A stretch of DNA of 64,000 bases from Podarcis filfolensis (Eukaryota). Shown here piece by piece: positions 2,904-62,927 of this stretch. The notes under the pieces are model-generated. The model was not told the DNA's origin. It was given only the letters and a program-made list of their open reading frames with translations, and ran no database searches. The DNA is taken from assembly GCA_964270895.1 (NCBI GenBank), contig OZ185437.1; one strand, written 5' to 3'. How positions within the stretch are numbered: position 1 is the first letter of the stretch; each line of letters opens with the position of its first letter. Both the position numbers and the translations under genes were made by a program.

Positions 2904-3212
2904 ACTTTATAAACACAATAGTTTAAATTGCATTCCTGCTTTAGAAACTGTTTTCCATGTCAATATGCCTCAATATGAGAGAGGCACAGGCAACATCCCT
3001 GGTAGCTCTGTGAAAATTCCTGTGGAACCTCTTGTAGGACATGATATCCAATGGCAGTCATACTCTGAGTAGACCCATTGAAACCAACAGCTTTAATTTA
3101 GTTAATAATAATAATAATAATAATAATTTATTATTTGTACCCCGCCCATCTGGCTGGGTTTCCCCAGCCACTCTGGGCGGCTTCCACAGAAAACCAAAAA
3201 TACACTAAAATA

Positions 3213-6200
3213 TCACAGATTAAAAACTTCCCTGAACAGGGCTGCCTTAAGATGTCTTCTGAATGTCAGGTAGTTATTTATCGCTTTGACATCCGATGGG
3301 AGGGCGTTCCACAGGGCAGGCGCCACTACCGAGAAGGCCCTCTGCCTGGTTCCCTGTAGCTTTGCTTCTCGCAATGAGGGAACCGCCAGAAGGCCCTCGG
3401 CGCTGGACCTCAGCATCCGGGCAGAACGATGGGGGTGGAGACGCTCCTTCAGGTATACTGGGCCGAGGCCGTTTAGGGCTTTAAAGGTCAACACCAGCAC
3501 TTTGAATTGTGCTCGGAAACGTACTGGGAGCCAATGTAGGTCTTTCAAGACCGGTGTTATGTGGTCTCGGCGGCCGCCCCCAGTCACCAGTCTAGCTGCC
3601 GCATTCTGGATTAGTTGTAGTTTCCGAGTCACCTTCAAAGGTAGCCCCACGTAGAGCGCATTGCAGTAGTCCAAGCGGGAGATAACCAGAGCATGCACCA
3701 CTCTGGCGAGACAGTCCGCGGGCAGGTAGGGTCTCAGCCTGCGTACCAGGTGGAGCTGGTAGACAGCTGCCCTGGACACAGAATTGACCTGCGCCTCCAT
3801 GGACAGCTGTGAGTCCAAAATGACTCCCAGGCTGCGCACCTGGTCCTTCAGGGGCACAGTTACCCTATTCAGGACCAGGGAGTCCTCCACACCAGCCCGC
3901 CCCCTGTCCCCCAAAAACAGTACTTCTGTCTTGTCAGGATTCAACCTCAATCCATTAGCCGCCATCCATCCTCCAACTGCCTCCAGGCACTCACACAGGA
4001 CCTTCACCGCCTTCACTGGTTCTGATTTGAAAGAGAGGTAGAGCTGGGTATCATCTGCATATTGATGGACACCCAGTCCAAACCCCCTGATGATCTCTCC
4101 CAGTGGCTTCATATAGATGTTAAAAAGCATGGGGGAGAGGACGGAACCCTGAGGCACCCCACAAGTGAGGGCCCAGGGGTCTGAGCACTCATCCCCCACC
4201 ACCACTTTCTGAACACGGCCCAGGAGGAAGGAGCGAAACCACTGCATAACAGTGCCCCCAGCTCCCAGCCCCTCTAGACGGTCCAGAAGGATGTTATGGT
4301 CGATTGTATCAAAGGCCGCTGAGAGATCCAGCAGAACTAGGAAACAACTCTCACCTTTGTCCCTAGCTCGCCGGAGATCATCAACCAGCGCGACCAAGGC
4401 AGTTTCAGTCCCATGATGAGGCCTGAATCCTGATTGGAAGGGATCCAAATGGTCCGCATCCTCCAGGCGTGCCTGGAGTTGTTCAGCAACCACGCGCTCA
4501 ATCACCTTGCCCAAGAATGGAAGATTTGAGACTGGGCGATAGTTGGCCATACTGGCCGGGTCTAAAGATGGTTTTTTAAGAAGCGGTTTAATGACCGCCT
4601 CTTTCAGCGGATCTGGGAATGTTCCCTCACAGAGGGAAGCATTCACCACCCCGCAGAGCCCATCGCCCAGCCCTTCCCGGCTTGCTTTTATTAGCCAGGA
4701 TGGGCAAGGATCAAGGAGACAGGTGGTTGGTTTCACGCGTCCAAGCAGCCTGTCCACATCCTCGGGGGTAACGGATTGAAATTGATTCCATGCAACTTGA
4801 CCAGACAGAGCTCTAGCACTCTCCCGCCCCAGCCCTGCTCCCACGGTGGTGTCTAGCTCCCTCCGAATATGAGTGATTTTATCTGCAAAAAACTTTGCAA
4901 AATCGTTGCAGGAGATCTTGGGGTCTTTACAAGGCCCCGGTGGTAAAGGTGGTTCCGTTAAATTGCGAACCACCTGAAAGAGTCTCCTGCTACTATTTTC
5001 TGCAGATGCAATAGAGGCGGTGAAGAAAGTCTTCTTCGCCGTCGCTATCGCCACTTGGTAGGCTCGAAGTTGAGCTCTAACCTGTGTCCGGTCAGATTCG
5101 GAGTGAGTTTTCCGCCACCGACGCTCTAGCCGTCTCAGCGATTGTTTCATCGCCCTCAGCTCCGAAGAAAACCACGGGGCTGTCCGGGCTCCATGCAATC
5201 GGAGAGGGCGCTTCGGAGCCAGACAGTCGATAGCCCTGGTTAACTCCGCATTCCAGCGGGCCACCAGGGAATCAGCTGAAAGGCCATCAACATGGGATAA
5301 AGCATCCCCTACCACTCTCTGGAAACCATTTGGATCCATTAAGTGGCGGGGGCGGACCATCCGAATTGGTCCCACCTCCCTGCAGAGGGGAAGGGTCGCG
5401 GAGAAGTCCAGTTGCACCAGGAAGTGATCTGACCATGGCACTTCTTTTGTTTCACTTTTACTTAGTGTCAGATCACCCACGTCACTAGAGGTGAACACCA
5501 GGTCTAAGGCATGTCCATGACTATGAGTTGGGCCAAACTTATTCAGGGACAGCCCCATGGAGGCCATGCTTTCCACGAAGTCCCGAGCGGCCCCTTGTAA
5601 GGTCGTGTCGGCATGGATGTTAAAATCCCCTAGGACAACCAAACTAGGTGTCTCCAGGAGAAAATCCGCCACGACCTGAAGCAGCTCAGACAGGGAATCC
5701 TTGGTGCAGCGGGGAGGCCGGTACACCAATAGGAATCCTGTACTGCCCCTATTGCCCAACTTCCAGAACATGCACTCAGAAAACTGGGTCTTCCCAGTAG
5801 GACGCCTGGTGCAAGCTAGTGACTTCCTAAAAATCACTGCAACCCCCCCTCCCCGCCCACATGACCTGGGTTGCTGTGCGTAAGAGAAACCTGGTGGGCA
5901 AGCAGCGGCAAGGACAGGCCCATCTGCTTCCTCCAACCAGGTCTCTGTCACACATGCCAGGTCAAATCCTCCATCCACAATCAGGTCGTGGATGGCAGTG
6001 GTTTTATTCATCATTGACCTGGCATTACACAGCAACACCTTCAGGTCATGTAGGTTTCCCCTGTTGATTCCAGTATCCATCCGGTCAAGGCCAGACCCGG
6101 AGGCAGGGATAGTCCTCAAACAACGACTAAACCTGCCTCCTCGGTAATGACATGGTCTGGTCTTAGCGTAACTCCGCCTCCTGCCCATGATCACCGAGAT

Positions 6201-6245
6201 CGGATGTCCCAGTGCTTCCCCCCCTGTGGAAGTTGTCCCAGCCAT
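3213..6245 (-). CDS. L2 ORF: AP-endonuclease plus reverse transcriptase, 1010 aa
   Basis: APE motifs (CNARS, TETWL, GGGVA, LGDFN, DLVF, SDH), RT motifs (QSGFR, LDLSAAFDT, GVPQGSVLSP, YADD) and the L2-type C-terminus HITPVLKDLHWLPV...FKVLVLTFKAL. No internal stops. Confidence 0.95.
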   Translation of the reverse strand: MAGTTSTGGEALGHPISVIMGRRRSYAKTRPCHYRGGRFSRCLRTIPASGSGLDRMDTGINRGNLHDLKVLLCNARSMMNKTTAIHDLIVDGGFDLACVTETWLEEADGPVLAAACPPGFSYAQQPRSCGRGGGVAVIFRKSLACTRRPTGKTQFSECMFWKLGNRGSTGFLLVYRPPRCTKDSLSELLQVVADFLLETPSLVVLGDFNIHADTTLQGAARDFVESMASMGLSLNKFGPTHSHGHALDLVFTSSDVGDLTLSKSETKEVPWSDHFLVQLDFSATLPLCREVGPIRMVRPRHLMDPNGFQRVVGDALSHVDGLSADSLVARWNAELTRAIDCLAPKRPLRLHGARTAPWFSSELRAMKQSLRRLERRWRKTHSESDRTQVRAQLRAYQVAIATAKKTFFTASIASAENSSRRLFQVVRNLTEPPLPPGPCKDPKISCNDFAKFFADKITHIRRELDTTVGAGLGRESARALSGQVAWNQFQSVTPEDVDRLLGRVKPTTCLLDPCPSWLIKASREGLGDGLCGVVNASLCEGTFPDPLKEAVIKPLLKKPSLDPASMANYRPVSNLPFLGKVIERVVAEQLQARLEDADHLDPFQSGFRPHHGTETALVALVDDLRRARDKGESCFLVLLDLSAAFDTIDHNILLDRLEGLGAGGTVMQWFRSFLLGRVQKVVVGDECSDPWALTCGVPQGSVLSPMLFNIYMKPLGEIIRGFGLGVHQYADDTQLYLSFKSEPVKAVKVLCECLEAVGGWMAANGLRLNPDKTEVLFLGDRGRAGVEDSLVLNRVTVPLKDQVRSLGVILDSQLSMEAQVNSVSRAAVYQLHLVRRLRPYLPADCLARVVHALVISRLDYCNALYVGLPLKVTRKLQLIQNAAARLVTGGGRRDHITPVLKDLHWLPVRFRAQFKVLVLTFKALNGLGPVYLKERLHPHRSARMLRSSAEGLLAVPSLREAKLQGTRQRAFSVVAPALWNALPSDVKAINNYLTFRRHLKAALFREVFNL

Positions 6246-7630: not shown

Positions 7631-7921
7631 CTATGAAAAAATGGACCAGTATATCAGGTTAAATAAAATGTATGCACCTGGAAATATTATTCTGGAATAC
7701 TTGTCAATGGCATGTGTATCAATCCTCATGCTGCTGTATCTCTGGTTTTTCCTCCTGCTTGAATTCCTTTCTGAGCCAAGTGCCAGCTGAACCATCATTC
7801 GGTCTTGTTTATCTCCATTTTCAGACACATACTGTCCCAGTTCATTCACCTCCCCGTCACTATAGCTGCCATCCATCCCCATCAGTTGCCTTGACTGAGG
7901 TAGTGTACAAGTGCAAGGAAG
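7631..7921 (-). CDS. GABRR1: rho1 coding exon 10 (intracellular loop, TM4, stop), 291 nt
   Basis: Encodes LPCTCTLPQSRQ...MRIDTHAIDKYSRIIFPGAYILFNLIYWSIFS*, ending in TAG. Acceptor ctctacag|. Confidence 0.98.
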   Translation of the reverse strand, partial: LPCTCTLPQSRQLMGMDGSYSDGEVNELGQYVSENGDKQDRMMVQLALGSERNSSRRKNQRYSSMRIDTHAIDKYSRIIFPGAYILFNLIYWSIFS

Positions 7922-8554: not shown

Positions 8555-8790
8555 TTGAATGAGTTTAAAAGAAGATTAGACAAATTCTATAAACAGCTAC
8601 CAGCCACAATGGCTATGTTCCACCTCCACTGTCAGAGGCAACATGCCTCTGAATGCCAGCTGCTGGTAATCACTAGTGGGGAGTGTGCTGTTGCAGTCAG
8701 GTTCTGTTTTGGGGCTTTCCACAGGCATCTCGGCCACTGTGATAACAGGGTGCTGGCTATTAACCTGATCTAGCAGGCTGCTCTTAACAT
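8555..8790 (+). mobile_element. Degenerate CR1-type 3' fragment in GABRR1 intron 9
   Basis: FKRRLDKF end of ORF plus a 3' UTR shared with the 35530 and 39690 copies. Boundaries approximate. Confidence 0.65.
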
Positions 8791-9204
8791 GGAAACATTC
8801 AGAGGTGGCATAGTGAGCTGCACCATTTCTACCTTTTTTTTAAAAAAAGTTAATATTTGGGCATCTCATGTTGCATGTGTAGATCCAACCCGAGTAAAAA
8901 AAACAAAAACTGGTTTGAACATACCCTTGGGTAGAACACAGTTTTACTGTTAGACCCCCATTGTGTGTGTGTGTCTGTCTGTCTGTCTGTCTGATTCATC
9001 TTTAGAATCTACACAGCCAGTGCTGGTTTTCCAGGGGGTACTCAAGGGTACGCAGCACAGACACCTCTTTTTTTGTTGTTAAAAAGTGTGGCACTTACTG
9101 TAATAACTTCATGGTGAGTACCAGCACCTAGTTTTCTAGGGGGGGGGGGGAAGCACCGTACAGAGCCATTTTATCTGCACAGCACCAAATGACGTTACAT
9201 TTAC

Positions 9205-9401
9205 CTTGTCTCGCAGCTTCCGTTCCTTTCGCTCTTGCACTGTAGTCAAGTAGTTTACTGCTGCGTACTCTAACACCGAAAGGAAGACGAACACAAAACT
9301 GACCCAGAGGTAAATGTCCACAGCTTTGATGTAGGAAACCCGAGGCATGGAGGCATTGACGCCCGTGATGATGGTAGACATGGTCAGCACCGTCGTGATC
9401 C
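9205..9401 (-). CDS. GABRR1: rho1 coding exon 9 (TM2-TM3), 197 nt
   Basis: Encodes (G)[65 protein letters not shown]. Acceptor tctccag|, donor AAG|GTAAAT. Confidence 0.98.
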
Positions 9402-9719
9402 CTGGAGACATACAATAATCCGTTTGGAGATGTCATTTTGGTGACAACTTGGCTTTGTTTACCCTAAACAGAGGGCCAAGTGTTTCATTAAGAAATGAAA
9501 TGCTAGCTTGAGGTGGGCTGCTCTACCTTCTTTGAATGGTGAGCTATCATCTTCCATGCTGTCACCTTTCTCTGGTTGTGGCCTGGTGCAAATTGTGTGC
9601 TGGATTGCATGAGCTGATGCATGGATGACCTGTGGGCTGATGGTACAGCCCTTGGACACAGATTTAGACCAAGGCTGCAGTCCTAAACATATTCACTAGG
9701 GAGTAAACTGCACTGAAAA

Positions 9720-9983
9720 TGTTAAGTTGTGGGGGAACATATCAGACGACACAACGATTCTTCAAACAGCTCTTGTTTATTCACAAGCCAGAACAGAACT
9801 GAGCTGAAGGGTTCAGCCAGTCTGCTTATATAGAGCTCCACTGCAATGCAACAGTAACCACTTTCTGTAACTATCCAATCACTGAATGTCACTTTCAATC
9901 CCTTATTTGCATATGTGGACCTGAGTGAAAACTATCTAGAGTATCCCCCTGCTGGCCCATGGTGAGAACTTCAGTACATAACA
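9720..9983 (-). mobile_element. Solo LTR (264 bp, Gypsy/BEL-like), in GABRR1 intron 8
   Basis: TGTTA...TAACA ends, octamer ATGCAAAT, ATTGG, TATATAA and AATAAA in LTR order. Near-TSD GAAAA/GAAAG. About 93% identical to the copy at 43740. Confidence 0.82.
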
Positions 9984-11189: not shown

Positions 11190-11342
11190 CTAAGGGAACT
11201 CTTGCAGGCACAGCTCTGCGGTCTATCCAAAAGGACACCCAGGACAGCATGACCATCAGAGTGGCAGGGAAATAGGTCTGGAGTAAGAAGAAGAAGATAT
11301 GCCGGCGTAAAGTGAAGTTGATGTAGAGGCGGTTGTACCAGC
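11190..11342 (-). CDS. GABRR1: rho1 coding exon 8 (TM1 and start of TM2), 153 nt
   Basis: Encodes (G)WYNRLYINFTLRRHIFFFLLQTYFPATLMVMLSWVSFWIDRRAVPARVPL(G). The 2' Pro is diagnostic of rho1. Confidence 0.98.
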
Positions 11343-14620: not shown

Positions 14621-14878
14621 AAAAGGTAAAGGAAAAGGACCCCTGACAGTGAAGTCCAGTCGCAAACGACTCTGGGGTTGCAGCGCTCATCTCGCTTTAC
14701 TGACCGAGGGAGCTGACGTTTGTCCACAGACAGTTTTTCCAGGTCATGTGGCCAGCATGACTAAGCTGCTTCTGGCGAAATCAGAGCAATGCACGGAAAC
14801 ACCATTTACCTTCCCGCCAAAGCGGTACCTATTTATCTACTTGCACTTTGACGTGCTTTCGAACTGCTAGGTTGGCAG
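14621..14878 (-). mobile_element. Sauria SINE, 5'-truncated, in GABRR1 intron 4
   Basis: Body and ACCTTT tail match the 2542 copy. 12-bp TSD TAATTCACATTA at 14609-14620 and 14879-14890. Confidence 0.9.

Positions 14879-51138: not shown

Positions 51139-51208
<70 letters not shown>
51139..51208. repeat. Perfect 70-bp AT palindrome (AAT)n|(TTA)n
   Basis: 35-bp arms, no spacer, centre between 51173 and 51174. Confidence 0.9.
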
Positions 51209-51431
51209 TATACCCCGCCCATCTGGCTGGGCTTCCCCAGCCACTCTGGGCGGCCTCTAACAAAATATTAAAATACAGTAATGCATCAAACATTAAAAGC
51301 TTCCCTAAACAGGGCTGCCTTCAGATGTCTTCTAAAAGTCTGGTAGTTGTTGTTCTCTTTGACATCTGGTGGGAGGGCGTTCCACAGGGCGGGTGCCAGT
51401 ACTGAGAAGGCCCTCTGCCTGGTTCCCTGTA
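51139..51431 (-). mobile_element. 5'-truncated copy of the same L2 family (3' end only)
   Basis: Clearly similar to 3128-3359, including the 3' hairpin, with an expanded AAT/TAT tail. Confidence 0.9.
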
Positions 51432-59561: not shown

Positions 59562-59870
59562 TCAGCAAAAGACAGACCAGTATATTAAATTAAAAAATAT
59601 ATAGGTGCCTGGAAATATTACTCTGGAGTATTTGTCAATGGCGTGTGTGTTTTGCATGATACGGAGGCTAACGTGTCCCTTCAGCCCTTTCTTCCTTGAT
59701 GAGTTAGACTCATTATTCAGGGCCAAATGGACCACCATCTTGTCTTGCTTATCCTCCTCAGCCACCATCTGGCCTCTTGGGTACCCTTCTAGGCTATTGG
59801 TATCCGATTCACTGTAAATACCATCCAGCATCATAGTTTTTGTAGAAGGTATTCCACACGTGCATGGGTA
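59562..59870 (-). CDS. GABRR2: rho2 last coding exon (loop, TM4, stop), 309 nt
   Basis: Encodes YPCTCGIPSTKTMMLDGIYSESD...QNTHAIDKYSRVIFPGTYIFFNLIYWSVFC*. The loop resembles mammalian rho2. Upstream rho2 exons lie beyond the window. Confidence 0.96.
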   Translation of the reverse strand, partial: YPCTCGIPSTKTMMLDGIYSESDTNSLEGYPRGQMVAEEDKQDKMVVHLALNNESNSSRKKGLKGHVSLRIMQNTHAIDKYSRVIFPGTYIFFNLIYWSVFC

Positions 59871-60450
59871 CTGAGAAAAGAGAACAATAAAAGGCAGATG
59901 AAAACTCAGGCATTGCAAAAACAGAACAGGGGACAAAAATTACACCTTGATTTTATACAGAAAATGCATTAATGTTGCAACTGAAAATCGTATTCTCTTT
60001 TTCTGCAGTTTCCCAAAGTTATTATCAAGACACACTAAACCCATACAGGTGTACTATCCATCTGCTCATGAAACCCTGTATGGGTTAAGCAAAGGTGAAT
60101 ACAGGGTGGAAAATATTATTTGTGTGACATAAGATAACAATAAGTTTTAATTCTGAAATTTTGCATCCATTTGGACTTACATTTCCTTGCAGTAAAGGTG
60201 CAATACAAAGTATTGCAGTAAAGGTGCAACACCAATACTGGAGATCCTTTAACTACCATATTTTTCTTATTTTCTGGAAGTCTGCAGCTCAAAATTTGAT
60301 TGAAAAATAGCTGAAGATAAAGACAACCTTTTTTTTCATACAGTAACACTGACTTACATAAATGACTGTAGAACTCAGAATGGTGATCACACAAATTATA
60401 CTTTTCCTTTTTCTACAATTAACAACAATATATGAGTCGCCATAAAAGCA

Positions 60451-60839
60451 AGGTAAAGGTAAAGGACCCCTGGATGGTTAAGTCCAGTCAAAGGTGACTA
60501 TGGGGTGCAGCGCTCATCTCACTTGAGGCCAAGGGAGCCAGTGTTTGTCCACAGACAGCTTTCTGGGTCATGTGGCCAGCATGACTAAACCACTTCTGGC
60601 GCAACGGAACACTGTGACGGAAGGCAGAGTGCACGAAGCCTTGTTTACCTTCCCACCGCATCAGTACCTATTTATATACTTGCACTGGTCTGCTTTCAAA
60701 CTGCTAGGTTGACAGAAGCATCTCATCCTCATCATCAAGAGGGACGCAGGTGGTGCTGTGGTCTAAACCACTGAGCCTCTTGGACTTGCCGATCGGAAGA
60801 TTGGTGGTTTGAATCAGCACAATGGGGTGAGCTCCGTTG
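60451..60839 (-). mobile_element. Sauria SINE with inverted 5' head (twin-priming type), in the last intron of GABRR2
   Basis: Body and tail on the minus strand (60451-60719), head on the plus strand (60741-60840). One 13-bp TSD, CGCCATAAAAGCA (60438-60450 and 60840-60852), encloses both parts. Confidence 0.85.
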
Positions 60840-61723
60840 CGCCATAAAAGCACAGCAGCCTGGACCCAACTCTATTCACACAAGTGGCAAACACTACAAC
60901 TAATCAGCTTCAGATGAGGATGTGTATCCCCATCGGCATTAAATGATATTTCAAGCCAGCTGACTGGGGCCCTAGGTGAACATCGTGTGGTTCAGCTGCA
61001 GATCCACCTGATCAGATTCACGTTGGCTGTATGTGTGGATCTCTGGTTTGCTTGTTTAATTGTGGGAAAGATGCATGAGCTACCCCTTTGCACTTGACAT
61101 GGAAAGTGCAAATGGGATGCATATGCCATTCATGCATCTGTTCTGGCCCCTTAATTAATAATTAATTATAAAATTATAATTAAGGTCATTTATGAGCTCT
61201 CTTCAGTAGCAGGAGTCTCAGGGCAGGGTGCAATTCAGAAGACACAATGAAAGTATAAAAGCAAAGCTACAGAGTTCACAGAAGCCACAACTTCTGTGTA
61301 ACGCAAGAGGCCCGTCTATATTTTGTATTGCAAGCGTCTAGCTCCTACTATTATATTGGCTGAATCCAGTTTTGAAATGCGCACCTGACTGGTCAGGGCT
61401 TCGTCATGATTCATCAGGAGTACCTAAAAACAATGCAGCAAACACAGGGAAATGCCATACTGAATTTCCCCCTTCTTACCCTCCCTATATTGTCTTTGCC
61501 AAAGTCCCAGGTTGCAGACTTCCCCAGTTCTGATCTTAGTTTCCTTCCCTCTGTTGTTCCTACTATCACCAACTCCTGCTTTTGTGGTGTCAGGGATTCG
61601 GAGTCAGCTTGCATGCTCTAGACAAAAATTGTTCACACACACAGACACACAAGGGTCAGTTTTCCTCATTCGCATTCACTAGCCCCTAATATATTAGTCA
61701 GGTGTGCAGGAAGTGCTTCTCAC

Positions 61724-61920
61724 CTTTTCTCGCAGCTTCCTCTGCTTTCGCTCTTGCACAGTGGTCAGGTAGTTCACGGCTGCGTACTCTATCACCGAAA
61801 GGAAGACGAACACAAAACTGACCCAGAGGTAAATGTCCACAGCCTTGATGTAGGAAACTCGAGGCATGGAGGCATTGACGCCCGTGATGATGGTAGACAT
61901 GGTCAGCACCGTCGTGATCC
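61724..61920 (-). CDS. GABRR2: rho2 penultimate exon (TM2-TM3), 197 nt
   Basis: Encodes (G)[65 protein letters not shown]. Acceptor ttttcag|, donor AAG|GTGAGA. Confidence 0.96.
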
Positions 61921-62331
61921 CTGAAAAGGCCCCACACAAGTGTTAAGAATTGGGTTTAATTTCAGCCAGGTCTCATAGCCACAGAACCTGTTTTCAAAAA
62001 AACTATTGCTCAGTGTGGTACATGTGAAGTGATAATGAACAGAATCTGCTTGAGGGTGTGCAGACATCCTCACCACTAAGCAATCACAGACAGACACCAG
62101 GCACACTGTGTTCAGTGGAAGAACTTGCAGGAAGGAACACTGGACCCCCTGGACTATTTTAGAATTAAATTACTGTCAACAAGCATCTATTATGAAGCTG
62201 AGCTTAGTTTCAGTGTTAATCATTGGGTCTTAGTCTCTCCCCATTTTAGTTTGGAGAATACAGTAATTCAAGAATGAGAAACCTTTTGACCTCCAAAAGT
62301 TACTGGACTGCAACTCCCATCCCATCAAAAG

Positions 62332-62774: not shown

Positions 62775-62927
62775 CTAATGATACTCTAGCAGGCACAGCC
62801 CTGCGATCGATCCAGAATGACACCCAAGATAGCATGACCATGAGTGTGGCTGGAAAATATGTTTGCAGCAAAAAGAAAAAGATGTGGCGACGTAACGTGA
62901 AGTTAATGTACAAGCGATTGTACCAAC
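62775..62927 (-). CDS. GABRR2: GABA-A receptor rho2, third-last coding exon (TM1 and start of TM2), 153 nt
   Basis: Encodes (G)WYNRLYINF...IDRRAVPARVSL(G). The 2' Ser is diagnostic of rho2. GT-AG boundaries. Confidence 0.96.
   Translation of the reverse strand, partial: VGTIACTLTSRYVATSFSFCCKHIFQPHSWSCYLGCHSGSIAGLCLLEYH

Follow-up and report, generated by a model that had tools for sequence, protein, structure and literature searches.

How two old tandem ion-channel genes, with silent sites that are elsewhere saturated, come to be almost identical over part of one exon is the question raised by the window, by which we mean the whole 64,000-nucleotide stretch of DNA analyzed here. GABRR2 (rho2) lies upstream and GABRR1 (rho1) approximately 52.5 kb downstream, both on the minus strand and thus in direct orientation, and all six exon borders have canonical AG/GT signals. 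The features on which the argument draws are the following.

9205–9401, minus strand: rho1 (GABRR1) exon 9, read from its translation and splice signals; 2 nt plus 65 codons
61724–61920, minus strand: rho2 (GABRR2) homologue of exon 9, from alignment to rho1 exon 9 and its splice sites
9274–9401, minus strand: putative young conversion tract, rho1 copy; coding nt 1–128, codons 1–42; 2/128 differences, pS 0.063
61793–61920, minus strand: putative young conversion tract, rho2 copy; aligned to 9274–9401
9205–9273, minus strand: 3' remainder of rho1 exon 9 beyond the young tract; codons 43–65; 10/69 differences, pS 0.43
11190–11342, minus strand: rho1 TM1 exon (exon 8), used as the unconverted control; ends ...ARVPL, with the 2' Pro
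62775–62927, minus strand: rho2 TM1 exon (exon 8), used as the unconverted control; ends ...ARVSL, with the 2' Ser
7631–7921, minus strand: rho1 last coding exon (TM3-TM4 loop, TM4 and stop), from its open reading frame and acceptor site
59562–59870, minus strand: rho2 last coding exon, from its open reading frame and acceptor site

Rho1 exon 9 covers TM2 from its 4' position, the TM2-TM3 linker, all of TM3 and the first part of the loop between TM3 and TM4. A word search with its 65-residue translation matched 192 exon-sized open reading frames with Pfam PF02932, the Cys-loop channel transmembrane region, which is also carried by the relatives identical across exon 9; the first 42 residues are invariant, a few single changes aside, in the 120 relatives that cover them among the matches listed. 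On these predicted proteins the two window genes are assigned as the GABA-A receptor rho subunit genes GABRR1 and GABRR2. The low-coordinate gene is rightly called rho1 and the high-coordinate gene rho2, because the last coding exon of the window rho2 is 72% identical to that of woodchuck rho2 (locus L010) and that of the window rho1 50%, and because TM2 position 2' is Pro in the one and Ser in the other, a known difference between rho1 and rho2 (PMC6609548). Two types of intron flank, one rho1 and one rho2, recur across mammals, and the duplication is dated by this comparison of sequences to before the mammal–sauropsid split. A sequence-only reading of this DNA had taken the genes to be ancient tandem paralogues close to synonymous saturation, and both this age and the silent divergence outside exon 9 bear it out.

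A direct count of 9205–9401 against 61724–61920 gives 12 mismatches in 197 nt (9208, 9222, 9223, 9225, 9241, 9244, 9249, 9256, 9259, 9273, 9325 and 9340). Ten of these lie within 9205–9273, the 3' end in the coding sense, and the two within 9274–9401 are both synonymous (codon 20, CGG/CGA; codon 25, AAA/AAG), exactly as the sequence-only reading had counted. Its estimate of about 30 differences in 153 nt with a single amino acid change for the TM1 exon pair is also accurate (30/153, ARVPL vs ARVSL). When the two halves of the window are compared by BLASTN, 9203–9404 matches 61722–61923 and the alignment does not extend beyond these coordinates; the similarity therefore ends at the splice signals, in agreement with the earlier observation that the flanking introns share nothing further.

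Nei–Gojobori counts of rho1 against rho2 were made for each exon. Exon 8 has pS 0.80 and pN 0.017, and the last coding exon pS 0.73 and pN 0.27; within exon 9, codons 1–42 have pS 0.063 and pN 0, and codons 43–65 have pS 0.43 and pN 0.057. Third positions are mismatched at 2/42 in the tract and at 27/50 in exon 8, and a Fisher test on synonymous sites of the tract vs exon 8 gives p=6e-10. In exon 9 the two longest stretches without a mismatch measure 61 and 51 nt, whereas no such stretch in exon 8 exceeds 11 nt. Exon 8 is under the same protein constraint as the tract and has a similar GC3, and its silent sites are nonetheless saturated. The similarity of rho1 and rho2 falls abruptly at codon 43 (Leu/Ile), which is both the first protein difference in exon 9 and the 3' border of the young tract. 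Exon 9 thus contains a delimited segment whose divergence is far below that of the homologous coding sequence on either side.

The DNA of twelve exon 9 open reading frames from other genomes, none of them judged to be human, was compared with the window copies. One of them (L005), from a more distant relative, aligns slightly into both introns of the window rho1 and is a rho1 orthologue. L010 and L009 are woodchuck rho2, and L004 is a mammalian rho2 with introns that align to those of woodchuck rho2 at 73%; L001, L006 and L013, which have both introns in common, are mammalian rho1, the other paralogue. Over the 128-nt tract the window pair differs at 2 nt, the window rho1 and L005 at 9, and the window rho2 and woodchuck rho2 at 12; the window rho1 differs from mammalian rho1 at 13–16, and either window gene from the mammals at 12–16. 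Tract pS is 0.28–0.44 for the lizard-like sequences against other lineages, several times the value for the window pair. Because the paralogues predate these species splits, independent evolution would leave the window pair at least as far apart as the orthologues. The two paralogues of one genome instead resemble each other more than orthologues of different species do, and the gene tree disagrees with the paralogy; the tract is younger than the paralogy, and is younger than, or has been maintained since, the split from the more distant relative.

We take this to be very probably the product of interlocus (non-allelic) gene conversion between rho1 and rho2 within the TM2-TM3 exon. The alternative that retains most weight, although we regard it as improbable, is that there was no conversion and the exons have stayed alike since duplication through codon bias or strong synonymous purifying selection, for example on splicing enhancers, RNA structure or the speed of TM2/TM3 translation. 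Fourteen degenerate tract codons are invariant in all 11–13 sequences compared and every one ends in G or C, so part of the similarity in the tract reflects codon preference or synonymous constraint. Tract pS between species is only 0.09–0.44, below saturation, and mammalian rho1 and rho2 of different species, with GC3 ~1.0, are only 3–8/128 nt apart. But 25/42 tract codons do vary among lineages, and at these codons the window pair differs at 2 and orthologues at 9–16; the window pair (2/25) is closer than rho1 and L005 (9/25, p=0.019) and than rho2 and woodchuck rho2 (12/25, p=0.002). The two window genes also share silent states that the mammals lack, including A/T-ending and G<->C ones (TCT8, GTC14, AAT15, CCT19, GCT26, ATT29, GTC38 and CTT40), and neither the saturation of exon 8 under equal protein constraint nor the sudden drop at codon 43 is expected of such selection. 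A nucleotide-level ultraconserved exon would have very low dS between orthologues in all species; the sequence-only reading had named this as the pattern that would speak against conversion, and the orthologue values given above do not fit it.

Among eight confidently labelled sequences, 0/197 sites are fixed between the rho1 and rho2 labels and 13 sites are fixed between lizard-like and mammalian sequences; two of the 13 are G<->C changes, which base composition cannot explain. A tree that forces each paralogue into its own clade loses 30 lnL and is rejected (AU p=0.0017). With RY coding the paralogue tree is marginally worse and misses rejection at the 5% level (AU p=0.068), a result that counts on the side of synonymous constraint, and with a p value of only ~0.07 base composition is a caveat on the tree test. 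Mammalian sequences have GC3 of 0.93–1.0, and this can drive convergence among them.

We do not use the maximum likelihood tree of nt 1–128 as evidence for a clade of the window rho1 and rho2, since it joins the window rho1 to L005 instead (77% support, on two homoplasy-prone sites); CTT at codon 40 is the sole state unique to the window pair. The latest conversion event may have occurred before or after the L005 split, and if before, further events are needed, with the pair remaining at 2 differences while L005 gained ~8. Exon 8 was considered as a cross-species control for clustering by paralogue and set aside: its silent sites are saturated and driven by composition (23 mismatches to woodchuck rho2 for the window rho1 and 29 for the window rho2), which leaves the 2' codon as the one informative position.

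That recombination was the mechanism, which way the sequence was copied, and that this recurred are matters that we infer. The latest event would have copied at least 128 nt, from the 5' exon border, or a point just within it, to codon 43. Extreme amino acid constraint, together with a preference for G/C-ending codons, would keep exon 9 as the sole long stretch of near-identity between the genes and hence as their only pairing site, so that a broken copy could invade and copy the other gene only there. Because the introns lack homology, the heteroduplex would stop at the exon edge and the tract would look confined to the exon, and each event, by restoring identity, would open the way to another. 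The 2' Pro/Ser difference is encoded in the preceding exon, separated from exon 9 by an unrelated intron of ~1.8 kb in rho1 and ~0.85 kb in rho2, and would stay untouched by conversion. A tract of 128 nt (at most 197) between copies 52.5 kb apart on the same strand is inside the known range of conversion. A point against conversion is that the 5' border of the tract coincides with a splice site, as selection on the exon alone would also give; another is that neither a donor or acceptor copy nor a polymorphic allele of the conversion was seen directly. The earlier proposal of exon-confined conversion thus stands as to an ectopic tract, which is supported by the exon 8 and last-exon controls, the orthologues, the trees and the assemblies described below; it does not stand as to the whole exon, the young tract being 128 nt long.

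The coincidence of the 5' border with the acceptor site would also suit a second route, in which a processed RNA or cDNA intermediate of the other gene was the template and there was no direct pairing of DNA with DNA. We consider this quite unlikely. A template running over the exon 8/exon 9 junction would bring in exon 8 sequence and delete the intron, but the silent sites of exon 8 are saturated and the introns remain in place; the other border of the tract is inside the exon, and the missing intron homology already accounts for the edge.

A third alternative is that the near-identity arose in assembly or polishing, with the reads of one paralogue correcting the other or the exon collapsed. 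The tract is short and lies between very deep repeats (9028–9150 and 9684–9900), and contigs do not allow the two window differences in the tract, 9325 and 9340, to be assigned to one paralogue or the other. In a word search with 8700–9900, DNA assemblies of seven coded organisms hold 54–77% of the words, and we aligned to this region the contigs (Logan) of four runs, X1, X3, X7 and X13, which have four organism labels and come from four studies. X1 is conspecific with the window (0 differences across 834 intron nt) and the other three are close relatives (~1% intron divergence). In all four runs a rho1 contig coming from the intron ends at 9303, a rho2-locus contig over 9203–9303 differs at 10 letters that are the ten known differences (9259 showing one additional variant), a single shared 131-nt contig spans 9274–9404, and a rho1 intron contig begins at 9375; 9205–9273 is present as separate rho1 and rho2 contigs. 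Since this is a k=31 contig graph, it describes two genes that share a node with its ends at 9273|9274 and 9404|9405, flanked on each side by branches specific to one paralogue.

Both the near-identity and the limits of the tract are therefore present in four independent data sets and are older than the split of these taxa. Mis-assembly had been put forward as a result that would undo the conversion proposal, but four independent assemblies give the same branching and merging structure, and node haplotypes T..C and C..T both occur among them; because the introns are unrelated, mis-mapping is possible only if the exons are already nearly identical. An artefact is accordingly a highly improbable explanation. 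Weaker still, and to our minds negligible, is chance or parallel compositional drift of two independent exons in one genome: both copies lie in one isochore and have equal tract GC3 (0.76), but the binomial probability of no more than 2 of 42 third positions differing at the exon 8 rate is 8e-12.

The haplotype in the shared node is rho1-type in X3 and X7 and rho2-type in X1 and X13. Its depth is near that expected for two identical copies in X3 (285.5 observed vs 290.8 expected, rho1-type) and in X13 (52.8 vs 48.7, rho2-type), and fits a popped bubble in X1 and X7. We considered the opposite haplotypes as proof of ongoing conversion and retain them only as a lead, because in 4/4 runs the deeper paralogue supplies the retained haplotype, as bubble-popping gives.

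Several other features were seen in these data. At the rho2 site homologous to window position 9259 (~61778) there is a G in the window, X3 and X13 and an A in X1 and X7, an A/G variant common to several species labels within the group. The repeats that flank rho1 exon 9 are interspersed repeats located in its introns, with summed contig depths of 1e5-2e6 in all four runs, and there is a G-run at ~9143–9153. Six small runs from five other coded organisms (X15–X20) hold 11–15% of the 8700–9900 words, approximately the share of the exon alone. Our guess is that these are RNA, in which case further relatives express a near-identical rho1 exon 9.

Mosaic contigs that appear to carry conversion into the introns were also encountered. 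In one mammal, L003 and L011 join rho2 intron 8, the exon and rho1 intron 9; across the 578 nt common to both they match at 100%, and their exon is identical at 197/197 positions to that of the rho2 contig L004. L007 is of the same kind, and it belongs to a third lineage in which all four combinations of the introns around exon 9 are found (L008, L007, L002 and L012). We therefore rejected the mosaics as evidence of conversion reaching the introns; they are probably chimeras of de Bruijn assembly through at least 30 shared nt. Short-read assemblies thus attach exon 9 to the wrong introns, with mosaic contigs in two lineages besides that of the window.

The data suggest more than one gene conversion event over long times. 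One pointer is the nested divergence, with pS of 0.06 and then 0.43 within exon 9 vs 0.8 outside it; a second is that no silent site is diagnostic of the paralogue among five mammalian sequences, in which the cross-species tract distances of paralogues (3–8) are within the range of orthologue distances (6–9). For the mammalian part of this argument, base composition (GC3 ~1.0) is an alternative. The third pointer is the depth of the shared node, which in X3 and X13 would suit two identical copies, although bubble-popping could by itself account for the haplotypes seen. The recurrent or long-term concerted evolution that the sequence-only reading had envisaged is suggested by these patterns and falls short of proof. 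A stronger version is conceivable but on balance doubtful, namely that rho1 and rho2 have undergone concerted evolution at exon 9 for >300 million years across the amniotes, that the exon is a self-sustaining island of homology where the constrained protein permits conversion and conversion in turn preserves identity, that conversion is still running, with a rho1-type tract fixed in both genes of X3 and a rho2-type tract in both genes of X13, and that the intron border shields the 2' Pro/Ser difference.

Exon 9 contains 11 CpG in each of rho1 and rho2, and exon 8 contains 4 (rho1) and 6 (rho2), so the counts of 11 and 4 cited earlier for rho1 in favor of GC-biased conversion are right. The bias itself is not established by them, as GC3 in the tract, equal in the two copies, is only slightly above that of rho1 exon 8 (0.68; 0.54 in rho2 exon 8). 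In a single, unpolarized comparison, 7/9 of the differences between rho1 and L005 are GC->AT on the L005 side. The raised GC3 and CpG and the rho1–L005 changes are compatible with GC-biased conversion.

Concerted evolution of tandem pairs is classical in the globins, the red and green opsins, and RHD/RHCE. As in rho1 and rho2, part of the gene is there more alike between the paralogues of a single species than between the orthologues of different species. These pairs are young or are converted over kilobases together with their introns, whereas the rho segment is smaller than one exon and the pair is older than the mammal–sauropsid split. A closer parallel is provided by the salamander tandem genes Nav1.1/1.2/1.3 and a duplicated Nav1.4 exon 26, for which non-allelic gene conversion is reported with listed single-exon tracts of 93–128 bp, supported by reads across the break points (PMC8476164). 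Like rho1 and rho2, these are old tandem ion-channel genes on one chromosome with short single-exon tracts over pore-forming segments (PMC8476164). The Nav tracts carry amino acid changes that confer toxin resistance and are read as adaptive (PMC8476164), whereas the rho tract has synonymous differences only and transfers no functional change; unlike in Nav, the functional TM2 difference (2' Pro/Ser) is outside the tract. For young human duplicates Harpak et al. report a mean non-allelic conversion tract of 250 bp, using introns, and a conversion rate that drops with rising dS (10.1101/135152). Tract length of the same order, a homogenizing effect and a rate that depends on similarity are common to those duplicates and the rho genes (10.1101/135152), but rho1 and rho2 are saturated elsewhere (pS 0.7–0.8), their introns are unalignable, and conversion persists in one island of homology that is enforced by the protein.

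A full-text literature search found no paper linking GABRR1/GABRR2 or rho subunits to gene conversion. The process is well known and the mechanism is not new; rho1 and rho2 are a new case of it. They offer a natural example of the reach of conversion, in that genes with saturated silent sites and unalignable introns still exchange ~130 nt, the constraint on the protein sufficing by itself to preserve the identity that pairing needs. Exon-level trees or dS for rho subunits are misleading if exon 9 is included, and probably so for other tandem Cys-loop genes. Conversion can also carry a TM2/TM3 variant from one rho gene to the other, which bears on how variation in the rho pore is read.

Other elements in the window include an intact single-ORF LINE (L2) at 3213–6245 on the minus strand, with its 5' region reaching to ~6872, which encodes 1010 aa with endonuclease and reverse transcriptase, follows the rho1 stop codon at a distance of ~1.4 kb on its downstream side, and would suit a lizard genome. 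The 3' end of a related LINE, at 51171–51431, is 83.5% identical to 3099–3358. A repeat of ~270 nt with 69–76% identity among its copies occurs at 60450–60715 (rho2 intron), 14623–14878 (rho1 intron) and, inverted, at 2653–2908 downstream of rho1, and has no connection with the similarity of exon 9.

Among the mammalian sequences, the first two letters of rho2 intron 9 are GC in several species (gcgaga..., translated as K-A-R...; L004:785-800, P0008, P0012, P0035, P0060 and P0063) and GT in woodchuck (L010 10178), which suggests a GC-AG intron with a donor that alternates between GC and GT in mammals. Finally, two of the database matches have unusual origins. P0048, entered for Acinetobacter baumannii as a 'hypothetical protein' of 82 aa, is rho exon 9 of a vertebrate with its intron flanks, and is a eukaryotic contamination in a bacterial assembly. 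The exon 9 open reading frame P0100 from ENA ends in ...EIGRAHV, which resembles a translated Illumina adapter (AGATCGGAAGAGCACACGTC); if it is one, it represents untrimmed read-through in a public contig.
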